DNA of 32,903 nt from Guillardia theta CCMP2712 (GCF_000315625.1 NW_005434496.1:1-32903), one strand, 5' to 3'; positions 5,336 through 32,903 are shown, counted from the first letter of the stretch. Numbers and translations: made by a program. The notes: generated by a model not told the origin, from the letters alone.

Positions 5336-9525
<4,190 letters not shown>

Positions 9526-19789: not shown

Positions 19790-19925
19790 GGGTTCCGGAC
19801 CAAGTCAACTGAGCCTCAGCCTCAGCAGTGACTGCAGCCTTGCGAACGGTTCAGCTGAGCCCGGACCGTGGCTGAGTCCGAGTCGGGCCGAGGCCCCGTG
19901 ACTGTCCGACGGTCCGACGGTCGCA
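19790..19925. repeat. Small GC-rich CCGG/GAGTC/CTGAG island upstream of the FN3 gene
   Basis: Shares words with 17640-18460 (GGCTGAGTCC, CCGTGACTG, ACTGTCCGAC) and contains short tandem duplications. Confidence 0.6.
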
Positions 19926-20079
19926 TTTGGAATTTTGTTCCTTGAACGGAACATCGGTAGTTGACAGGCGGGTCATCCATCTAACCGGCATGGCCGGAAG
20001 GCCTGCAGGGGGGGAAGCGGGGGGGACGGCGGGGATTTCATGGCTGAGATGGCGAAGAAGGAGAGGACGGCTGGGGGAG

Positions 20080-23000
20080 ATGCTGCTGAAGATGCTGATG
20101 ACGACGATGACGATGGCTGTGCGAGGAGACGCTACATGTTCAGTGGATCCGCGACAGGAGCGAGTTAGAGGTGTAGTCGCTTCCGAGGTCGATTTGACAT
20201 CAGTGCTCATATCATGGGATGGCAGAACAGGGGTGCTGTGCGCGAAGTATGTTCAGGTCCTGTGGAAGAGGCAGGACACGCTGTCATGGGAGGCAGGGGA
20301 GATCGTTGGGTCGTCAGTTGGAAGCATCAGAATCGGAGGGCTGGAAGGAGGGACTGTGTACAGTGTTAGAGTTCAGACTGTCACCAGTGATGGGTATGGG
20401 ATACCGGAAGATGTAACGGTCGAAACAAGAGATTTCTTGAAGGCAACTAACTTGTTCGCAAGCACCGACAACAAGAGTACGAGCGCTACCTTGACCTGGT
20501 TGAACGCTACCATCAGCGAACAATACCTACAGTCGTTGTTATCCAGCGAGGATCAAGGTTTGACTTGGAACAATATTGTGGCGATTCCAGTTTGCAATCT
20601 CAACGGAAGTTATTGCACACAGACGGTGAACGGCCTCAAATCAATGCAGGCGTATCAATTTCGTGTTGAAACATCATTCAAAGACGCGAAGGGTGTTCTG
20701 CCAAGCATCCCTTCAAACAGAATAGTTATCCTTGATACATACCCGCCAGGCTCTGTCAGTCTTCAGTCTGTGAATTCAACTTCATTCTCGGTCACAATCA
20801 CATGGACAGATCTTTCTCCCATCAGTTCAATCAAGCAACACCTGATAGAAATCATTCTCGCTTCACAACAATTCCCTGACCCCAATCCGATTTCATCATC
20901 CTCGTCCAACATTGCAACCTTGTCCAACCTACCGAAGAACACACAGTTCTCAGTCAGAGTGTCCATTGTAGACATCTACGAAAGGACATCTCTTCCCAGC
21001 CAGCCTCTCCTCATATCCACTCTTCCTACTCTCCCGGGAAAGATCAACTTGCCAACAGCAAACATTTCCAATCAGGTCATCGTGCTGACATGGATGTCAT
21101 TGAAGTCAAACAACGAGACTGGAGGGCTGCCCATCCTCTCTTACAGGATTTATGGGAAGAGAAGCGATGAGACAAGCTTCACTCGCATTCTTGAGTTCAC
21201 ACCCTCTTCGTCGATCCAGCAGGTCACGTTACATTCTCTGTCCTCCCTCGCTGACGTTTGCAAGGCAGACTGCGAATGTTCAGTCCACCGTCGCTGGATT
21301 TGCCTATCAGTTCATAGTGACAGCGGTGAACTCAGTCGGGGAAGGGTTGCTGGGTACACCCTCAGTCAGTATCACTTCACCAATCTCTCCTATGATCAGC
21401 TCGCCGCATGTACTTTACATGTTCCAACGTTGCCTGCTGTGAATTCTGTTGGTTGCTCAGGTGAACATCATCACAAGCAAGGATTCGTGCGCTGCAAACG
21501 TCTCATGGGGATCCGTCTTTGTGCAGAGCCAGGGCTACATCGTTTCGATGCAGGTAGACTGAAGTTTCTCTGACTTCTGCAAGTAGTCAGCCTCAGAAAC
21601 TGACTGCTGCTGTATCAGGACTTGTTTGCTGGGCAAGGTGTACCCTTTGATGCTGGGATTGTGCTGCCTGCAGACCAGCGGTCTTATCTGTACAGCAACT
21701 TGTCGCAAGGGTTCTTGTACACGTTCAGAGTTGTCCAGTTTGCGGATCATCAAACTGCCAGTCAGTACAGCATTCCGGTAAGAGAAAGAGACTCTGTTTG
21801 CTTCCATGACCTCTCGGAGCTTAACTTGCCTTCATGATTGACTTCATTGCTCTTGAAACTCCTTTCTCCTTCTCTTCCATCCTCCCTCTTCTCGTCATCC
21901 TCCCTCCTGCTTCTTGCTGACACCGATAGCCTCTTCCTCCTCTTCCTCCTCTTCCTCCTCTTCCTCCTCTTCCTCCTCTTCCTCCTCCTCTCGCTCGCAC
22001 TCTAACCTTCCTCCTGCTCAGGTCACTGTAGAGACTCCAGACAGTAGCGCCCCGACGTCTGTCCGCGCGGACTCCTCGGGGCTGGCCATCACTGTCCAGT
22101 GGGTTGCTCCCTTGCTCGTGAATGACATCTCAATGTTCCAGGTGCCTCCTACTATCCTCGCTCCCTCCCTCGCTCCCTTCTGCTTCGCTCCCTCCCTCCT
22201 ACCTACCTCCCTACCTACTTCCCTCCCTCCCTCCCTCCCTTCCTCCCTCCCTTCCTGATCTCACGCACCGTTCCATGCAGATCTTTCAGGTCGACGAGGC
22301 TGGTCAGATCACCATGCTGTCGACATCGTCCTCCACACTCTCCTTGACCGTACAAGGAGTTGTTGGCAAGCAGTACAAGTTTGCAGTGCAGACAAGATAT
22401 GTCAACGGTGAGTCCTGGATGTGTTTGAGCTTCGTTGATTACAATCAACTCTTCCTTCCTTATCTCTGCTCCACTCCATTCTCCTGTCCTTCTCTTCGTT
22501 TCTCCCTCCTCCAACACCACTCGTAATTCTTTTCAAATCATCTCGTCTCGTTTCTCATTTCCTTTGACGTTTACATCCTTATCCTTTGATGTATTCTGTT
22601 GCTTACTCGTTGTCTTCTTTCTCTCCTCTCTCCTTCGCTCCTCTCTCCTCTCCTCTGTTCTTGACGTCTTCTCTCGCCTCCCCTGCTCCTCTCCTTCTAT
22701 TCATCTTACCCTCTCCTTCATTGTCAACCAGGTAGCGGCTCTCGAGTCAGCTTGTGGTCTCCCAACGTCTCTATCCCAGCAACCGTTCCTCTTCCCGTCT
22801 CGGCCCCTACCCTCCAGCTCGTCTCCAGCTGCAGCAGGTGCATCCTAGTCTCTTGGACCTTCTCAAACGTCGCGCCTACCAATGGAGGAAACGCCAACGT
22901 CTCCTTCGAGGTCAAAATATGCCATAGCTCTCCCTCCTGCCGAGTTCCTCCTGCTTCCCTCCCTCCCCGCTGCTCCTGCCTGCCTCCCTGCCTGCCTCCC

Positions 23001-23834
23001 TGCCTGCCTCCCTGCCTCCCTCCCTGCCTGCCTCCCTGCCTGCCTGCCTGCCCCTTCCATTTTAGTGTCTATACGTGCTACTCCTTCCTTCGTGATTTTG
23101 ATTCTACCATTCATTTTTCACCTCTTTTCCCTTCCCTCTCCTCCCTCTCTATCCTTCTCTCTCTTCCATTACCCACATCTTCTTCCCTCCCTCTCTCTCC
23201 CTGCCTTCTTCCCTCCCTCCGTCTGTCTGTCCGTCCCTCTCTTTCTTGTTTCCTCCCTCTCTTTCGTTTCTCCCTCCCTCTCTCCTCATCATTTTCCTGC
23301 CATGACGTCTTTGCTATACAGGTCCAGGACTCTGTCGACTCGATCACAGTCCCAACAGGCGACGTCCGCAGCGTCACGCTGACCAACCTCAGACCCAAGT
23401 TGTTTCATCAGATCGCAGTGCGAGTTAAGAACAACATTGGCTCCTCATCATGGAGTTCCTCCTCTTCCATCTTTCTCCCAGCCACCTACCCTGATGCTCC
23501 CACCAACTTGCAGGTTGTGGTTGGAAGCTACCAGGTGGTCAGCGGGATCATACAAGTCAGCCTTTCCTGGTCTGTTCCGCTGTCAGGGGATGATCAGAAG
23601 CTTGTTAGTTACCGCCTGTACAACACAACGATTCTCAATGATCTTGATCAAGGGACGGTGATCACTGTTGCCTACGGGAATGCGAACAATTTCACAGTGA
23701 AGAATCTTGTCGGGGGGATAGAGTACACTTTCCGTCTGAAAGCAATCAACAGTCAGAACTTGGAGGGGCCAAGCTCGAACTCAGTCTTCTTCGTTGCTGG
23801 CGAGGTTAGCGAACTCAGTCAACTCACTCTCCAT

Positions 23835-23899
<65 letters not shown>

Positions 23900-26800
23900 T
23901 TCGTTGACCTGTGTTGTCGTTCTTTCTGTGATTGCTACCCCTAACAGTTTCATTACACTTCCTCCGTGTTTATCTTCTTTCAACCCTCCTCCACTCTCTT
24001 CCTCTCTCCTCCTCTCTCCTCCCCATCTCCCTCTCTCCTCCCTCCCTCCCTCACTGACAGTTTGTCATAGGTTGCCCCTCTAGCCATGCCTGCTCCCTCT
24101 TACTCTGCCATCGCAAACCCTGATACCGGATCCTACTACAAGGTTCAAGTGTCTTGGGTAACGCCAACGTCAACAAGAGATGTAGGAGGAACAGCGTTGC
24201 TGAATCTTGTCCTCCAATACTCCAACCAGAGCTCGACTATCTCCCAGCCAAGCACCATCACAGACTGGAAGACACTGTGCACACCGGTCGACGCTTCTTA
24301 TCCCTGCTTGTCGTCAGGCAAACTTTCCGTCGTCTCCTCCATACAGTTCATCGTCATCAAAGGGACTTACTACTACCTCCGCATCGCTGCTCAGAACTCA
24401 GTTGGGTTGGGAGCTTTCAGTGACGTGTTATCCATCCCTCCTTTCTTCACTGTCCCTACTCAACCTCCTGCTCCCAACCTGATCCCTGCCACCAACAATG
24501 GGGTCAGTGTGGGGTGGGAGAGCTATGACGCGGCCTGCAGCGGTTGCTACCTCAGCAAGACAGTCAACGGAGGAAGGGTGATCACGAACTTGCAAGTCAT
24601 GATCAACCTAGGGGACGGAGTTTGGCGTATGCTCAACGACACTGTTGTGGGAGCTGCGAGAGCGACGGGGATCATCTACTCAAACGAGGACATTTACTCC
24701 AAGAAACGATTCAGCATGACCCTCTACGGTACCAACTACTCCTTCCGCATCCGCGCGAGCAACGACAACATGGCGACCTGGAGCTTGTGGTCGCCGACGT
24801 CAACAGGGACTACCTTGACCAACACGTTCGCCAACCTCAATGTCTCCTCCGGCTCCCCTCCCACCACCTGCGTCTTCTTCGAGTGGTACTACCCCTCTGA
24901 TTTCTGTGCGTCTGGTTGCGCCGTCCTCTACTTCGGCCGCTCCTCCTCCTCGCTGCAAGCAGCTCAAGTCGACGTCAGCATCAGCTACTCCACCTCTCAC
25001 GCTACTGGTACCCTCTGCAACCTGATCCCCGGCTCCTCCTACTACTTCCAAGTCAGAGGGAACCAGTCTGGAGTCTCCTACTCCTCCTCTATCTTCGGCC
25101 CCCTGCTCACCACCGTCGCCGTGCCCTCAAGCTCCATCTCCTTCTCTGTCCAAGTTCTGCTCGGCAGCGACCCCTCCGTTGGCAGCGTCCTCGTGCAGTG
25201 GGCTGACTTCTCCTCCTCCTGCTCAGCTGGACCCATCAATGCAGATGGCTCCATCAGCGCCTGCCCACGAGGCGGCCCAGCAGAGACTGTCAGGTGGCAA
25301 GTGTACATGCGGTTGAGCGGCACAGCCTACGGCAGCGCGCTGGTCGAGCTAGAGGAAAGCAAGCTGACGTACCAGGTGACGGGCCTGCTGAAAGGATCCT
25401 CGTACTGCTTCACCATGCGCAGCAGGAACAGCGTCTTGAGCAGCAACTTTGCTACTGAGCAATGCCTGACAGGAGCTTTCGTTACCGTGCCTGCTGCTCC
25501 TCCTCCTCCCTTCGTCCCTACTGCGAGCCTGACGAGTCTGCGAGTTAGTTTCCGTCCTCCCTCCGACCTCGGCGCGAGTTACGCAAAAGTGAAGAACTTC
25601 TTGCTGACCATGACACCTGGAAGAACTTCCGTCAGCGAGCAGTTCCAGTTTGACTGGCAGCGGTCTACCATCGTCACCGGACTCCAGGCGAACTCTCAGT
25701 ACAAGTTTGACTTGCGAGTCAAAAACGACCTGGTCGACAGCTGGAGTGAAGCTAGCTTGCCTACCTACGGGCAGACTGTCTCCCTCCCCCCAGCTGCCGT
25801 CCAGGTGTCAGGCACAGCAGCGACCAGCGTCTCGCTCGCCCTGAGCCCTCCACCAGTAGCTCAGCAGGGCAGCAACATCATCTATGGGTACAAGGTCCTC
25901 TATTCCTCCTCTGCTCTCAACGGCTCGTTCCTCTGCGCAAACGACGGCTTTTCCACCTGCCAAGTCTCCTCCCTCCTCCCTGGGATCAGGTATGACATCA
26001 AGGTCTCCACTAGCAACGACCCGCTCCTCCTCGCCAGCTTCGGCCCTCCCTCCTCCTCTGTCTTCGCCACTACACAGGCATACGCTCCCATCATCGGACA
26101 GCCAACGGTCTCAGGCGTGGACTGGCAGAGTGTGTATGTCTCATGGACTAGTCAGGACAGCGGCTCTCCCCTCTCCTCCTACACCATCGTCGCCTCTTCG
26201 GGCACATTTGAGCGGACTTTTCAGTCCTCCTCCTCGCCTTTCCTCGCGACTGGACTCGGATCGTCCCGCGTCTACACGTTTACCGTCACAGGGAGCAACC
26301 AGCTCGGGACAGCTACCAGTCCTCCCTCTGCCCCCTTCCTCCTCCCCCCAGCTGCTCCCCAGCGCCCCTCCTTCGTTGAGGTCCACAGCAGGTCCGTCGT
26401 CGTGTCCCTCAGCAGCAGCAGCAGGAGTGCTGACGTCACCAGCCTTGAGCTGCAGTACAAGACTTCTCCCTCCTCCTCCCAGTACGAGTCCAGCCTCCGA
26501 CTGATCCGCAATGCAGCATGGACAAGCATGGCCCCGGTCCCCTCAAGCCAGCAACAACTTACCATCAGCGGCCTTGCCAGCTCTTCCCAAGTTCAAGTCC
26601 GCATCCGAGCGCAGAATCCTACAGGGCTCAGCACTTGGTCGGAGATAGCGAGTACGACGACTATGCAGGAGGCTCCGTCCTTACCCTACGTGGAGCAATT
26701 CGGAGCCAAGTGGGTGCTACTGAAGTGGACGCCTCCCACCGGCGCGAAGAATTTCTACACGATCATCATCAGCATGTGGAACGGGTCCTCGTTCCTGGAC

Positions 26801-29800
26801 CTCCCACCCTTCCAGAAGCAGGACGGCGCAGCCGACTCGCAGAACCTGACTGCGTTGCTGAAGGGCACGCGGTACCGGTTCAAAGTAGCGGTGCTCCGGC
26901 TGGACGGGGGGGTCAGTGACTTCAGCGTGCAGACAGACGACATAACGACTCTCAGCACAGTCCCCTCCTCGGGTCCAGCCCTTTCCTTCTCCTCCGACGT
27001 GGGCGTGTCCTGGGTGGTGGTCCAGTGGACGTCTGACATCTCTTGGGAGGACAGGGGAGGGGAGCCCCTGCTGTCATACGAGCTGCAGGTCAGGGAGGAA
27101 TCTCAGATGTGGACCGTTGCGATCTCAAGGAGTTTCAACTTGACATCTGTCAACTCCTCAGCTGGGATGTCCCAGGTCAACTTCACCGGGCTGGTGGGAA
27201 ACACGAGATACGCCTTCCGACTGTCCCTCCGGAACTCCAAGGGAGGAGGAGGGTACGGACCAGACTCTGACCTTGTTATCACCCGCCCCCTGGCTCCTCC
27301 TCCTCCTTCCACCCTCTCCAGCCTGCAGTCCGTGCTGGTCAGCTGGGTGTCAAACGTCAACTTTGACGGGTTCAAAGTTCGCGGGTATCGGGTTGACAGC
27401 TCGGTGGAGACGCTGATAGGGGAGAAGCTGGCGGGGAAGACAGAAACGTCCATCCTCTTCTCTGGTCTGGCATTGGATAAGGAGTATCGCTTCAGCTTAG
27501 CGGGTAACACCCATGCTCGCTCCTCTCCCCTTTTTTCTGCTTCTCTCCTTCCCCTCCCTCCTCTCCCTCCCCTCCCTCCTCCTCTACTGCCCCTCTCTTC
27601 CCTACTAGTTCTTCTACCCTCTCTGCTTCTCCTAGTCATCTTGCTCTTCCCGCTGCTCTCTTGATTGTCCCCGGCTTCTGCGTTATGTCTTTTCCCTTGT
27701 GCACCTACTCCTCGTTCTGCTACGTCTTTTTCCTCTCTGAACTCTCTTCACAGTGAGAAATGCCGCTGGCTGGGGAGATTTCAGCAGCAAGAAAGTGACA
27801 AGAACAACGCTGGCAGCGTTTCCTCTGCGTCCTACTGCCATCACGATCATACAAGACACTTCTGCTACACTCAACTGGATCACCCCCAACGATGTACAGA
27901 GTACCATCGGATTCCTTGTGTATGCCTGCGAGGTTTGTGCTGTATGTTGTCTGACAAGAGAGTAGAGGAGATAAGATGAGAAGAGAGCGCCTTGAGAGGA
28001 GAGGAGAGGAGAGGAAAGGGGAGGAGAGGAGAGGGAGATTTGGGGCCGTAGGGGGAGTGGCTCGCATTTGGAGGGAGGTATTGAATTAGGCATCAGGGCT
28101 GTGTCTGCAAAGGTTGTCAATAGAGTAAGGGGGTCAGCTCTTTCCGCTGCCGAGGATGTCTGCATTGCGCCTCCCGCCCCTGGTGTCTTGTCCAGCCCGG
28201 GTAANNNNNNNNNNNNNNNNNNNNNNNNNNNNNNNNNNNNNNNNNNNNNNNNNNNNNNNNNNNNNNNNNNNNNNNNNNNNNNNNNNNNNNNNNNNNNNNN
28301 NNNNGGAGGCATTTCCTCAGTCACTCACGGAGTGAGGGAGGGAGGGAGGGAGGGAGGGAGGTAGTAAAGGAAAGGGAAGGAGAGAAGGAGCAGGGAGGGA
28401 GCAGGGGTGCAACGGTAGTTCTAAAGAGAGGAGCAGGTGATGGTACAGCTATGCATTTTTCCCTTGACTGGCGGCTCAATTCCAAGCTCGCTGACGAGGA
28501 CAGGGTTGAGGAGGAATACCAACTACACTCTCAGGCTGTCAGTAGCAAATCCAGGAGGAGAGGGCCCGTTAGGCCAGGAGTCTGAAGTGTTCACAACCTA
28601 CTCTACGTTCCCGGACAGGATGGCAGCAGTGCGGGTGGACGCGCTGACCAGCAACGAGCTCCTGGCTAGGTGGACCCCCCTAGTGGGATGGGACGAGAGG
28701 GGAGGCCTCCCAGTCTTCGCCTACTACGTCAAGATCGTGGCCGTCGACTACAACTACTCCAAGATGTTTTCCGTGTTCCCCTCCAACTCTTCTGATCCAG
28801 CTGAAGCCCAACTCGTTATCTCCGACCTCCTGCCCAACTCGGTGAGCTGACTCGATAGTGTCGCTCGTGCTGATCGAACTGCCGCTGTGAAGCTCTACGA
28901 CGTCACCGTCCTGGCTGAGAACACTGTACCTGCTGCTCCTCCTCCTCCTCTTCCTCTTCTTCCTCCTCCTCCTCTTCCTCTTCTTCTTCCTCCTCCTCTT
29001 CGTGCTCCTGCTTCTTTCCCCCTTTCGCTCCTGCTCTTTGCCTTAGTAACTTGACTTTTCTGCTCGATCTCCTCCTTGTTTGCCTCCTTCTCTCAGAAAT
29101 CCTCCTTCACTCAGCCTCCTCCTCCTCCTCCTCCTCCTCCTCCTCCTCCTTCCAGCCCTTCTTCTGCTCCTCCTTCTCCCTCTTGTCTTCCTCTCCATGG
29201 ATTTGACCATGACCTCACCAGAACTGCCTTGTGCAAGAAGGGAAGGTCATCGCAGGGATCGACTGCTGCGCCGATCACGTGTGCTCGCCGTTGTCACCGG
29301 CGACGAGGAACTCGACGCTCATGGGAACGCTTCCTATTCCTTTCATCCGATCCGCTACCGGCAGTGAGATCCTCGTGGGGTGGAATGCGATACAGGGCTC
29401 GATCAGCAACTTGCTGGAGATTCAAGTGGAGTATCAGGTGTTAGAGGGAAGGAGGAGGGAGGGGAGGGAGAGGGCAGACATGGACTGGAGAGAGGATGGG
29501 ATGGGATGGGATGGGATGGGATGGGATGGGATGGGATGGGATGGGATGGGATGGGATGGGATGGGATGGGATGGGATGGGATGGGATGGGAATAAAGGAG
29601 GAGGGAGAGGAGGAGGGTCTATAGTATTCGAGCAAGCCAAGTCTTACACTTGAGGCAGGATGCCGACAGGTCTTCTAAATTCTCCACGGATCAATGGTTT
29701 TCAGTGAGTGTTTTCTCTTAAATTTCATTTGTGTTTTCATCAATTTTAACTTCTTGTCAGGTTCAAGAACCCGGAGACGCAACTTCGGTCCTGATATCGG

Positions 29801-30046
29801 ATCTCCTCCCTAACAATGCGTACAACGTTCGGATCCGAACCCTTGACATCTTCAGACGTCTGGGCCCGTACAGTGACACTGCTGTCCTGATCACGATCCC
29901 GCAAAAGATTGGAAACCTGACGGCTGAAGCAATCGGTGATGATGATGATGATGATGGAGATGGTGATGATGATGATGATGACGATGATGATGATGATGAT
30001 GATAAATGATGATCATGATCATGATCATGATCATGCTGATGGTGTC

Positions 30047-30107
<61 letters not shown>

Positions 30108-31432
30108 AATATGCAATGATGATTGCAGCAAGTTAGCCACACATGTTGACAATCGTCTTCGTTCCATCACCTCACGATTCTTATCAGGTTCATCTTCAGC
30201 GCATTTGAGTTGGTCGCCTCCATTAGGAAGGAGCAAAAATCTCATTGGGTTCAACATCTCCATCCAAGAAGTTTCACAATTGTCCCCCGGTTACCTCTCC
30301 TGTCCTGTCCTGTCCCGTCCTCTCCTCTCCTGTCCTCTCCTCTTCTCTCCCCTCCTCTTCTCTCCCCTCCTCTCCTCTCCTCTCCTCTCCTCTCCTCTCC
30401 TCTCCTCTCCTCTCCTCTCCTCTCCTCTCCTCTTTACTCCCCTCCTCTCTTCTCCTCTCCTCTTCTCTTGCTCCTGTCTCCGCTTTTTCACTTGCTCCTG
30501 ACTGTCTTCTTTTCCCAGCTCTCTCGCCCCTCCCCATCTTCATCATCGTCAACAACATCTGGACAGACTATATCGTCACACAACTCAAGAGAAACACGCA
30601 ATACATCTTTCAGGTCGCTCCCATCAACTTTGCAGGACAGGCCACCTTCTCAGACCCTGTGAGATATGTTTTCATCTCCTGTTGTAAGTGTATAACGAAC
30701 CAATTTCCGTCAGAGTCTGTTGATCAGAACGGCACAAGAAGACGAAGTAGTCAGTTGTTCATTCTTTGGAAGTGCTCTGCACAAGAGCATTAGCGGTGAG
30801 ATTATTTGCTTTCTTTCTTCAACATTGCGATAATCTCTTCAACGCAGGAAACGTTCTCATTCAACGAGTTTCGTCTGCATACAGCATACAGGGCAAAGTC
30901 AACAACATCGCTCCTGGTATCTACAAGATGTTTGTTTCGCCGACAAGGATTAGTCAGAGTTACAACTGGACGGCAACTGGTTCGTTGTTGCAGGTATGAT
31001 GATAATTTGTTGTCATGTCCATCTCTTCTGCTGTCTACTTTGTTTCTTTCCCCTCTGTGTTTAGAATGGAAATTGTTTCATCCTGTCCTGCATTCATTCT
31101 TGTTTTATGTGCCCCTGACATCTTGGACTCAATCGTTTTCAATTCAAGTTGCAAGACTTCGATGCGAGCTTGACATTGTCGGAACTTTACGCCAACAAAC
31201 AAGACGACGCCTCCTACACAGGTACTGTACATCTCCTTTCACATCATGATAGAATCAATCGAGTTCTCACTTTTCTCTTCGCAGTGAACAGAAGTTATAC
31301 TTCTCAAGTGGGAGCAGATGTGTTCAGTTTGTATGGAAGCAACTCATACGTGGGTGGGACAGTCGCAATTGTTACTAACAACGAGGTGAATTGAATCTAC
31401 AAAGCATCATTCACCAACTGATCGCAACTCCA

Positions 31433-31474
<42 letters not shown>

Positions 31475-32903
31475 CTCCCCCCCACCATCATCTGCTCCTC
31501 CCTCGCCTCTCCCCCCCCCTCCCCCTCCGTCCATCTGCTCCCCTTCCCGCTCTCCTTCCCCCCCCTCAACCTCTTCCCCACTCTTCAACTCATCTGATTT
31601 TCTTCTTCAACTCTCTAGATGTTGGCTCAATGTCAGCTCGGCATATCAAGACCGAGCCCCAGTCAGATCAACGCAGTTGCCTCTCGTCCCTCCTCCTTCG
31701 CTTTCTGTCAACTCCAGCCCACACAGACCTCGTTGGCAAATCTCAGGTTATGCTCGTCCTCCTCCTCTGCTGCTGCTGCTCCTCCTCGCTGTGCTGCTGC
31801 TGCTGCTGCTCCTCCTCCTTCTCCTCCTCTGGATCCTCCTCCTGCCTCTGCCCGTGCTCCTGTTACAGCACCACCACATTCTTTTCCTCCATCCTCATCA
31901 TCTTTCTCCTCCTCCCCTGGCTCCTTCCCCTCCCTCTTCCTCTCCTCACTTGCTTTCAGCGGTATCGTCCTTCTCCAGCAGGCGGAGAACAACCTCGTCA
32001 TAGTCCGCGCAAGGATCTGCGGCTTACCTTCCAGCCTGACCGTCACTCTCAGCCTCAACGATTTCGGCGATCTCACAGACAAGCCTCAATCACTTGGGTC
32101 AAAAATTTCTCTCATTGGTGACATGTCATTCGACAACCTCGGGGTAACGATCACCTGTTCTGTATTGTGAATTATGCGTGTGTATCTGATACACGTCAAA
32201 TTCCGATCAAGCTGAAGTGTGTGATATCACGTGTAGTATCATGTTTGCAGATTTAAGTTCACACCTGGTGTTTCGAACCTCAGACTGTCTCTTTGAAATC
32301 TTTTTGCTGAACTTGCCTGCAGTCTGGAAATCTCTTCAACCCCTCCTCCTCAGCTGTCTCCCTTGACGCAACTTCTCCTCTCTCAGCTATCGGACGGTCT
32401 TCCCCTCTCCTCCTCCATCTCACAGCAGATTGACCAGCTTGCAGGTCCATGAGCGTCTACGAGACTACCGACCTGACGCTGGTGGCAACTTGCGTGATCG
32501 GAAGAGATGAAGCGACGACGAGCGAAGAATTCATCCCTCCATGCACTCCTTGCACGTATGCTCTCAACCAGGAGGTAAGTTCCTTCACCTTGAACTACCA
32601 ATCCCAACTCCACTCCCATGTCCTCCCTCTCCTGCTCCATCTCCTCCCCCTCACTCTTGTCTCTCTGCTCTGCTCTGCTCTGCTCTGCTCTGCTCTGCTC
32701 TCTTCAACCCAACTCAACTCTCATCTTCCCAGGACACCTTTGTCTCTGTCGCTACCATGTTCGGGGGTCAACTGGATGGACGTCTGGTCTCTCAATATCT
32801 TCTTGCACCCTGATCGCGCCCCCCCTGCGGGCACGAGCGTCTTCTATGCTCATCCTTACCAAGTGAGGAGAGCAGAGCAGAGCAGAGCAGAGCAGAGCAG
32901 AGC
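20080..32903 (+). CDS. Giant secreted or surface protein: signal peptide, ~24 fibronectin type III repeats, two Cu/Zn-SOD-fold-like domains, LysM; 3' end lies beyond the window
   Basis: More than 20 exons, most of which I could join in frame (joins around the 28205 gap are uncertain); largest exon ~24071-27502. Recurrent FN3 signature (V.+.W..P ... L.PG..Y.F.V.A.N..G...S). Start ATG at 20080 (alternative 19990). C-terminal exons show SOD-fold motifs (FGDLT, SLYGSNSYVG, AIGRSMSV, ATCVIGR) and a LysM motif (YALNQEDTFVSVATMF). Confidence 0.9.
23835..23899. repeat. (ATC)n microsatellite in an FN3-gene intron
   Basis: Read directly from the sequence. Confidence 0.95.
28205..28304. other. Assembly gap (100 N) within the FN3 gene
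   Basis: N run in the sequence. Confidence 0.99.
29494..29590. repeat. (GGATG)n microsatellite in an FN3-gene intron
   Basis: Read directly from the sequence. Confidence 0.95.
29937..30103. repeat. (GAT)n/(GATCAT)n microsatellite in an FN3-gene intron
   Basis: Read directly from the sequence. Confidence 0.92.
30295..30465. repeat. (CTCTC)n/(CTGTC)n microsatellite in an FN3-gene intron
   Basis: Read directly from the sequence. Confidence 0.9.

Follow-up and report, generated by a model that had tools for sequence, protein, structure and literature searches.

The window, that is, the whole 32,903-nt stretch of Guillardia theta DNA that was analysed, carries a single cryptophyte nuclear gene of at least 28 exons whose product, a protein of extracellular type, exceeds 2,760 residues. 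The one-gene model runs from 20080 to 32857 on the plus strand, as do all exons and domains given below, and counts 28 exons including one hidden in a gap of Ns. Its spliced ORF of about 2,762 codons is free of stops and ends at the splice donor at 32857, still open at the window edge, in agreement with the more than 2,700 amino acids put forward by an earlier reading made from the DNA alone (the sequence-only reading). Relatives were found only in Hanusia phi, whose P0002 is the best relative (74% identity over the exon at 28437-28838), and in two metagenomic eukaryote lineages. The metagenomic orthologue P0014 has about 11 FN3 domains, both SOD-like units and two LysM domains in one uninterrupted ORF of 1,459 amino acids. 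On its contig (L001), this ORF is overlapped by an upstream FN3 ORF of 1,319 amino acids as called (1,357 as an open stretch), giving a total of about 2,800 amino acids, the same size as the window's protein, and a hydrophobic leader stands before the first FN3.

The boundaries of the 5′ exons (20080-24071) are predictions, with no RNA support here. Exon 1 (20080-21222) is predicted to encode the initiating Met, a weakly hydrophobic signal-like N-terminus, FN3 1-3 and most of FN3 4; it lies in an open frame at 19876-21570 with FN3 HMM matches at 20170-21243, and a GT donor follows at 21223. Seven short predicted exons (21284-21409, 21461-21553, 21619-21777, 22022-22141, 22281-22407, 22732-22910 and 23322-23804) complete FN3 4 and carry the array to FN3 8, and at every junction within 21284-23804 a GT..AG pair can be chosen that leaves the reading frame open and the FN3 units complete. 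FN3 9-19 are encoded by a giant exon of 3,432 nt (24071-27502), which was identified by Pfam fn3, the FN3 HMM and transcript words; 95% of its sampled words are present in X1, one of the two transcriptome-like runs (X1 and X2) that supplied contigs, and its 3′ donor (27502/27503) is supported by RNA. An X2 contig joins it (27502>27753, GT..AG) to an exon at 27753-27932 that holds the end of FN3 19 and the first half of FN3 20, with a GT at 27933. Beyond an assembly gap, FN3 20b-23 are encoded by seven exons (28437-28841, 28893-28925, 29222-29437, 29659-29703, 29761-29935, 30188-30289 and 30519-30658). Three joints in this region were seen in X2 (28840>28892, 29703>29761 and 30658>30714), and the other boundaries were worked out from the contig's length, the depth bins and the reading frame. 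The exon order in 28437-30658 matches that of P0014 and P0089, and the region contains a conserved CC-x-DH-x-C insert.

The gap itself (28205-28304) falls in the middle of FN3 20. It is bridged by an X2 contig that passes from 27753-27935 to 28436-28523 with about 83 letters fitting neither flank; the 536 nt of this contig (X2 record 5) consist of 182 + 183 + 88 placed letters and 83 unplaced ones. The apparent joint 27935>28436, across the gap, reads TG..CA. Counting the 3 nt before and the 1 nt after the unplaced letters, 3 + 83 + 1 = 87 nt, and the gap therefore probably hides an exon that keeps the frame and is about 87 nt (29 codons) long, a length obtained by arithmetic on the record lengths of one contig and not by direct reading. 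The sequences on either side of the gap match adjoining parts of one FN3 in P0014, which has a Cys-rich insert at the equivalent point of the same FN3.

The sequence-only reading had placed FN3, SOD-like and LysM domains in a single gene, and the transcripts bear this out. One spliced X2 contig of 1,658 nt joins the FN3 exon at 29761-29928 to the exons out to 32142, and the 340 nt left over fit the final three exons to about 32860, so that FN3, SOD-like and LysM exons are carried together with the frame kept. Overall, the transcriptome contigs gave 12 listed joints, 11 of them GT..AG and one, across the gap, non-canonical. An alternative is that adjacent FN3 and SOD-like/LysM genes were merged by read-through or mis-joined at the gap. 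The 5′ introns without RNA evidence and the non-canonical gap joint would leave room for this, and one contig across two genes is not in itself proof of one transcript; however, the spliced contig keeps its exons in frame, the orthologues keep the same order within one ORF (P0014 among them), and the gap flanks fall within one P0014 FN3, which makes such an artefact very improbable.

Pfam fn3 (PF00041; cut-off 25) matched the open stretches at 19876-21570 (E 1.7e-16, 60.6 bits), 22665-24080 (E 1.8e-12, 47.7 bits) and 24071-27661, a stretch of 1,197 codons (E 1.7e-48, 163.2 bits, 7 stretches). A gene-specific FN3 HMM found 25 segments on the spliced model, corresponding to 23 units, so the earlier count of about 24 was right to within one. 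At 20080, the N-terminus (MLLKMLMTTMTMAV) has a mean Kyte-Doolittle value of 1.09, which is only weakly hydrophobic, so that "signal-like" was a fair label for what is a putative signal peptide. No membrane segment, scored as a 19-residue window with mean hydropathy >1.6, was found across the 2,762-aa model, which carries 33 N-x-S/T sequons and conserved Cys pairs.

Long arrays of FN3 domains are a typical feature of adhesins and matrix proteins. Searching 1.84 billion representatives with one FN3 exon gave as best matches very large multi-FN3 proteins (1,266-6,329 aa, up to 25 matched stretches), and the window's protein shares its long head-to-tail array with the giant FN3-array adhesins and matrix proteins of bacteria and eukaryotes. 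It differs from them in its C-terminus: among the best 150 matches, only P0014 and P0089 have the SOD-like/LysM module. Word searches with this C-terminal module gave no match. The combination of FN3, SOD-like and LysM domains, which the sequence-only reading had not recognized from any known protein, appears not to have been described previously. The company of giant FN3 proteins, together with the dimorphic, probably sexual, life cycles of cryptophytes (PMC7486100), might point to a cell–cell or cell–substrate adhesin, such as a gamete agglutinin or an attachment fibre, in which the FN3 array adheres and the LysM foot anchors. We regard this as quite improbable, given that neither a known adhesion motif nor a known partner domain was found and that transcriptomes from several independent cultures contain the gene's transcripts, an indication of ordinary vegetative expression.

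Downstream of the FN3 array lie two SOD-fold-like units without metal ligands. Unit 1 (30750-31640) is encoded by exons 30714-30794, 30847-30991, 31147-31218, 31282-31383 and the start of 31617-31742, whose joints are all GT..AG in one X2 contig, and unit 2 (31697-32502) by exons 31617-31742, 31956-32142, 32322-32395 and 32444-32572, whose joints are present in both X1 and X2. A linker of about 25-30 aa with a conserved AQCxxGxxRP motif separates the units, which are barely alike, hhalign aligning their last 25 columns only. Pfam Sod_Cu (PF00080) is blind to them: with an E limit of 10 it matched neither the window exons nor the orthologue units taken singly, and with a limit of 0.1 it gave no match on the whole of P0014. 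When orthologue profiles were compared with PDB sequences, solved Cu/Zn SODs came first (E 2e-4 to 3e-3). Orthologue profile A3 matched 2e47 at E 2.3e-4, with unit 1 aligning to 3ce1 (E 1.1e-3, chain residues 13-129) and unit 2 to 7b4o (E 2.9e-3). The orthologue unit 2 profile alone retrieved only SOD-family chains at E <0.01, including TIME 2e47 (E 2e-4) and SOD 7b4o (E 2.6e-4, residues 6-147/153). The window units align to the orthologue units, and the window model matched P0014 in phmmer at 6e-31.

Modelling of P0014 unit 1 gave a structure of 8 strands (pLDDT ~55-78) for which SOD1 is the best match in structure (6flh, Z 9.7, rmsd 3.1, 106/118 residues), and many further SOD and CCS chains are among its matches; GH2 Ig-like sandwich domains match nearly as well (Z 8.6-8.9 vs 9.7 for SOD1). 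The unit 2 model has a pLDDT of 31, and the unit 2 and LysM parts of the models (pLDDT 31-45) are too poor to use; the structural match supports unit 1 only. Two SOD-fold-like units, as the earlier reading had proposed, are accordingly present, both being supported by orthologue profiles and the first also by a structural match of the modelled orthologue unit.

Taking the Cu ligands H46, H48, H63 and H120 and the His3Asp zinc site as reference, unit 2 of the window has S, N, a non-His residue and Y at the four Cu-ligand positions, P0014 unit 2 has R, H, S and Y, and P0173 unit 2 reads F at the H48 and H120 positions. Across three lineages, His at the H46, H48 and H120 positions is kept only by P0014 (at H48). 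Unit 1 has no His at the Cu-ligand positions, and the zinc loop is missing or without His. On these alignments, the two units are best described as degenerate Cu/Zn-SOD-fold barrels without the metal-binding histidines. An extracellular antioxidant, with active Cu-only SODs on a stalk like fungal Sod5 or the animal CSRPs, would be in keeping with the homology of the units to Cu/Zn SOD, with the occurrence of Candida Sod5 (4n3t) among the structural matches of unit 1, and with the extracellular location of Cu-only SODs and CSRPs and their lack of a zinc loop (PMC13017621). However, the S/N/Y residues of the window, the differences among the three lineages and the lack of any ligand in unit 1 make this extremely improbable, as a conserved catalytic site would not be expected to differ in this way between lineages.

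Both CSRPs and Sod5 resemble the window's protein in being extracellular (for the latter, by prediction), in having SOD-fold domains (in tandem) and in having lost the zinc site (PMC13017621). CSRPs comprise 4-12 tandem Cu-only SOD domains joined by linkers of 5-9 aa, with Cu sites intact in many repeats (PMC13017621). Here, in contrast, two dissimilar units joined by a long linker and without conserved Cu histidines stand between FN3 and LysM domains; membership of the CSRPs was considered and rejected on the number of units, the linker and the Cu ligands. A precedent for a SOD Greek-key barrel without catalysis, as proposed here, is offered by CCS domain II and Bacillus subtilis YojM, of which 1ej8, 1jk9_B, 6fp6_B and 1s4i match the unit 1 model at Z 7.4-8.2. 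CCS, a chaperone inside the cell that docks onto SOD1, and YojM, a lipoprotein, are both small, whereas the protein described here is giant, modular and, by prediction, secreted.

A CTPC motif and LysM 1 follow at 32542-32857, split by an intron (32573-32730) and ending at the GT donor; the joint 32572>32731 is present in X1 and X2. The assembled window has an extra base at 32763 that breaks the LysM frame; contigs from X1 (depth 30.6) as well as X2 (depth 10.5) leave it out. With this base removed as in the transcripts, the 54-aa LysM 1 has Pfam LysM (PF01476) as its top family (E 0.0011; 19.4 bits, slightly short of the gathering score of 20.9), so the sequence-only reading was right to see at least one LysM in spite of the intron and the 1-nt frame error. 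The C-termini of P0014 and P0173 have two LysM each and score above the cut-off (22.6 and 25.9 bits, respectively), LysM 1 of P0173 being the best Pfam stretch in the 25.9-bit slice. The orthologue C-terminus also matches LysM chains in the PDB (4uz2 at E ~1e-3, 8i2e, 4s3k and 1e0g); the LysM part of the P0014 model has a low pLDDT (27-46). X1 record 3 extends 227 nt beyond 32857, and the protein continues past the window. Further LysM domains and a transmembrane or GPI signal had been suggested as things to look for downstream; in the orthologues, a second LysM is there and a hydrophobic anchor is not, since they end about 20-35 residues after LysM 2 with a hydrophilic stretch and no hydrophobic tail.

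The established ligands of LysM domains are peptidoglycan and chitin (PMC4004799). A LysM tip could accordingly capture or sense bacteria or chitin while their presentation or agglutination falls to the FN3 rod, serving bacterivory, control of the phycosphere or innate recognition, and the lack of a membrane anchor in the model is what would be expected of a soluble agglutinin. A tether, however, requires two attachment ends, and only one binding end was found, with nothing to tie the rod back to the cell; the tether reading is therefore weakened, and we consider capture possible, if rather unlikely. Since the protein has one glycan-binding end and no membrane segment, and its orthologues end without a hydrophobic tail, a scaffold held in a covering that contains GlcNAc, the other option raised by the sequence-only reading, would appear to fit somewhat better than prey capture.

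We lean towards the view that the protein is a secreted FN3 rod kept on the alga's own surface by a LysM foot, with SOD-fold units that are non-catalytic. At about 3.5-4 nm per FN3 domain, the secreted array would make a rod that is semi-rigid and some 80-90 nm long. Its C-terminal foot, made of the two SOD-fold barrels and the LysM pair, would bind a GlcNAc-containing glycan non-covalently, and the rod may thus be retained on the cell's own surface layer, be it the surface periplast or a fibrillar coat, and either stand out from it or pack side by side. In this view, the SOD-fold units would serve as structural or binding barrels in the manner of CCS domain II, not as enzymes. The cryptophyte periplast is proteinaceous (PMC12223506); that cryptophyte surfaces carry a GlcNAc polymer is not established, and we found no paper on one.

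The periplast of Komma caudata reportedly contains a polypeptide of high molecular mass that is secreted (Perasso et al. 1997, cited in PMC12223506). This polypeptide is like the present protein in coming from a cryptophyte and in being very large; it is secreted and forms the outer cell covering, as is proposed for the present protein. It is conceivable, though unlikely, that the family is this large secreted polypeptide, or one of several, from which the cryptophyte surface periplast or a fibrillar coat is built, and that its foot of two SOD-fold barrels and two LysM would define a LysM-based means of self-anchoring common to many surface proteins of the alga. We know of no sequence for the Komma caudata polypeptide, and its identity with the FN3–SOD–LysM family is a hypothesis only. 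Were it true, the covering of this "wall-less" alga would contain an unrecognised GlcNAc-containing polymer, and the SOD fold would have a new non-enzymatic use. Terminal tandem LysM domains likewise act as a non-covalent glycan anchor in bacterial C-terminal-LysM wall proteins (such as LytE-type endopeptidases, YaaH and MltD), to which the solved LysM chains matched by the orthologue C-terminus belong; the present protein differs from these in that its cargo is a rod built of some 23 FN3 domains, with two SOD-fold barrels, instead of an enzyme, its host is a wall-less eukaryotic alga, its ligand is a presumed one, and a CxxC motif precedes its LysM.

In the Guillardia theta window, we identified an expressed single gene on the + strand, extending from 20080 to the window end, in which an array of FN3 units is followed in a set order by two SOD-fold-like units (unit 1, 30750–31640; unit 2, 31697–32502) and a LysM domain (LysM 1, 32542–32857). 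The window sequence is eukaryotic, and from 19.9 kb onwards it carries on the + strand many open stretches with stop-rich low-complexity segments between them. The three largest of these stretches lie far above the Pfam fn3 cut-off of 25 bits: 19876–21570 (60.6 bits), 22665–24080 (47.7 bits), and 24071–27661, which has 1,197 codons (163.2 bits). The gene model consists of 27 sequenced exons and one putative hidden exon, with 2,762 codons, zero stops, and an end still open at the window edge. Its 3′ exon boundaries were mostly fixed by RNA-supported joints; three boundaries with no listed joint were set by transcript-contig size, depth bins, reading frame, and the orthologue, and alternative exon solutions at 29.93–30.66 kb were ruled out by the depth bins and the orthologue match. 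In the 5′ part a GT..AG solution is available for every junction, and there the exons, introns, and start codon are predictions. A gene-specific FN3 HMM found 25 segments, corresponding to 23 units, on the spliced model. The N-terminus of the model is weakly hydrophobic, its N-x-S/T sequons number 33, and a scan of its 2,762 codons found no hydrophobic 19-mer and no membrane-spanning segment.

Sequencing runs with 77–95% of the words sampled from the big FN3 exon (24071–27502) contain only 35–42% of those from the intron-rich stretch 28.3–32.9 kb, as would be expected of transcriptomes. Transcript contigs were placed on 27000–32903, the stretch with the assembly gap and the disputed domains. 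The run X2 gave 12 listed joints, of which 11 are GT..AG and the twelfth crosses the gap; an additional joint, 31742>31956, was deduced from the pieces of one X2 contig, and the last three joints were independently confirmed by a second run, X1. One 1,658-nt X2 contig is spliced from FN3-coding exons (29761–29928) through the SOD-like exons, with listed pieces to 32142, and the 340 nt left over can be accommodated by the last three exons, which bear the LysM, up to about 32860. An X1 contig (record 3) continues 227 nt further than 32857, which is enough for an ending of the orthologue type (second LysM plus short tail). The contigs of another run, X8 (2011), are unspliced at 28389–28922 and 30697–31132, across introns removed in X2; they therefore come from genomic DNA or unspliced RNA and do not support transcription.

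The public assembly disrupts this gene twice, by a gap (28205–28304) that probably hides an exon and by a 1-nt indel. An X2 contig of 536 nt (record 5) lies on 27321–27502 and 27753–27935 and resumes at 28436 with 88 letters, leaving 83 letters (536 − 182 − 183 − 88) that match neither gap flank. Its joint at the gap appears as TG..CA and carries the flag 'between: not known'; canonical sites are present nearby, with GT at 27933 and AG at 28435–28436. From these lengths we infer, as the simplest reading, an 87-nt exon (3 + 83 + 1; 29 codons) in the unread stretch, with the frame kept. A Cys-rich insert is present at exactly the gap position of the corresponding FN3 in the metagenomic orthologue P0014. 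At window position 32763, one base is absent from the contigs of both X1 and X2. The LysM exon as assembled undergoes a frame shift and then reaches a stop, while in the transcript reading no stop precedes the GT donor at 32858; the extra base probably reflects an indel in the assembly or a difference between strains.

No identical protein was present in the protein collections searched, possibly a consequence of the gene being broken in the assembly. When the 1,197-aa exon was used for a word search, there was no self match and a sole relative, P0001, with 32% identity over FN3 only. The closest match of exon 28437–28838 was a 154-aa Hanusia phi fragment in EukProt (74% identity), which points to a cryptophyte, probably Guillardia theta. 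The best 150 matches of this FN3-exon search, made over 1.84 billion representatives, were then searched locally using the last 362 aa of the spliced model, and among them only P0014 (1,459 aa, E 6e-31) and P0089, together with its longer cluster-mate P0173, contained the C-terminal module. Scanning metagenomes with the C-terminal alignment gave four loci, all from the two lineages already found, and a word search using the last 320 aa of the orthologue gave no match in the size range of 176–560 aa. FN3, the SOD fold, and LysM are each known, as is the logic of a LysM-tipped secreted protein; given the empty word searches, the two matches in the best 150, and the two lineages behind the four loci, the combination of an FN3 array, two metal-less SOD-fold barrels, and a LysM pair appears to be undescribed. 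ESM Atlas features gave no usable match for the C-terminal module.

P0014 is a single uninterrupted ORF found on eukaryotic contigs from metagenomes. In contig L001 (63.6 kb), which carries a gene of this type, the called upstream FN3 gene (1,319 aa, in an open stretch of 1,357 aa) overlaps the start of P0014; its first FN3 is preceded by a hydrophobic leader, and about 22–24 FN3 units are countable. The comparison of the window gene with the orthologues indicates that architecture and size are conserved in at least three lineages. In L001:3850-13771 (Ga0620987_03668, uncultured eukaryote) the orthologue measures about 2,800 aa, shows the same architecture, and has introns near its 5′ end only; the overlap of the ORFs of 1,357 and 1,559 aa at 9092–9374 suggests one intron or frameshift there. 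In the second environmental lineage (P0173 residues about 525–555; the P0089 and P0167 C-termini), the predicted proteins share a break point that follows APTDRVPPP within SOD-like unit 2, where they either end or carry an odd 30-aa insert; the most likely cause is an intron missed by gene calling of the prokaryotic type. Conserved landmarks of the three-way alignment are AQCxxGxxRP (between the SOD-like units), RxCG, LGRSxxxY, AxCVxG, PPCTxCT, WSLN, and AGTSVYYAHPY. Window exons entered in alignments as fragment rows were misplaced by MAFFT and left out.

The orthologues terminate after LysM 2: in P0014 and P0173 the second LysM precedes a brief hydrophilic tail, in which two Cys are conserved, and then the protein ends. 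Their C-termini each exceed the Pfam LysM cut-off in two stretches (22.6 bits for P0014 and 25.9 bits for P0173), with LysM 1 the best LysM stretch in P0173, and the solved LysM proteins matched by the orthologue C-terminus include 4uz2 (1.1e-3), LytE, YaaH, and MltD. The family that best matched window LysM 1 (54 aa, transcript reading) was LysM, its 19.4 bits (E 0.0011) falling slightly under the cut-off. Pfam searches of raw ORF pieces and single 3′ exons gave neither Sod_Cu nor LysM, since the domains are split across exons of 24–62 aa.

Sequence profiles support a relationship of both units to the Cu/Zn SOD fold by homology, and unit 1 has structural support as well. This evidence comes from the orthologues, to which the window model aligns at E 6e-31. 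A phmmer search of all PDB sequences with the orthologue C-terminus retrieved the SOD homologue TIME (E 3e-3), and a four-sequence profile gave TIME at 2.3e-4, the Cu/Zn SOD 3ce1 at 1.1e-3 (unit 1), and 7b4o at 2.9e-3 (unit 2), with 13 of the 19 chains listed belonging to the SOD family. The profile of unit 2 alone matched only SOD-family chains below E 0.01, its alignment to 7b4o spanning residues 6–147 of 153. AlphaFold2 modelling of the 409-aa C-terminal module from the four-sequence alignment (mean pLDDT 45) was usable for unit 1 only, which formed an 8-stranded sheet domain at pLDDT about 55–78; unit 2 modelled alone was unusable (pLDDT 31). In an exhaustive structural comparison the unit 1 model matched SOD1 (6flh) best (Z 9.7, 106 of 118 residues), followed by many SOD, CCS domain II, and SOD-like chains at Z 7.4–8.5, with generic GH2 Ig-like domains interleaved at Z 8.6–8.9. 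Foldseek with the first module model was weak, tethered SOD dimers being the two best rows (E 3.5e-3). Only the last 25 columns of the two units could be aligned by hhalign, which gives no support for a recent internal duplication.

The units do not qualify as members of the Cu/Zn SOD enzyme family: Pfam Sod_Cu gave no match in window exons or orthologue sequences, and the metal ligands have been lost. In window unit 2 the residues at H46/H48/H120 are S/N/Y, and these positions differ from lineage to lineage; the zinc loop is missing or has no His, and unit 1 is devoid of any metal ligand. An enzymatic SOD role is unlikely. Among extracellular SOD-fold proteins, CSRPs and fungal Cu-only SODs (PMC13017621) are the closest relatives, but they keep their copper sites. 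The gene probably joins the few known examples in which a Cu/Zn-SOD fold has been co-opted for a non-catalytic role.

We infer that the protein is secreted, that its FN3 array would form a rod of about 80–90 nm, and that the C-terminal foot may attach it to a GlcNAc-containing glycan. The sequence-only reading had proposed, as one option, that the LysM tip captures bacteria or chitin, which we consider a less likely alternative. Retention on the alga's own covering is preferred, on indirect grounds, because only one putative binding end was found, because its LysM occupies the very C-terminal end, an arrangement shared with wall-retained proteins of bacteria, and because a 1997 paper (Perasso et al., cited in PMC12223506) reportedly describes a secreted polypeptide of high molecular mass in the surface periplast of the cryptophyte Komma caudata. 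Our literature search on LysM or FN3 in Guillardia, or on a Guillardia chitin synthase, found nothing relevant. Very little is known, to our knowledge, of what molecules build the cryptophyte cell covering, and an expressed giant predicted-secreted protein with a putative glycan-binding foot is a concrete candidate for a role in that covering or in algal–bacterial contact. Its interest would grow if it proved to be a periplast component or revealed a GlcNAc polymer on cryptophyte surfaces.

Some features of the introns were also observed. The 213-nt intron 31743–31955 separates the linker exon from SOD-like unit 2; it is stop-free and in frame, and its retention would add 71 low-complexity residues; the 183-codon ORF 31619–32167 is this retained-intron reading, and a word search with its 183 aa gave no match. 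Introns at 23830–23900, 29450–29600, and 29936–30100 are filled with microsatellites, namely (ATC)n, (GGGATG)n reading as 'GMGWD' repeats, and (GAT)n. Other introns are very short: among the 18 introns of the 3′ part that RNA supports or constrains, 7 measure 48–63 nt.
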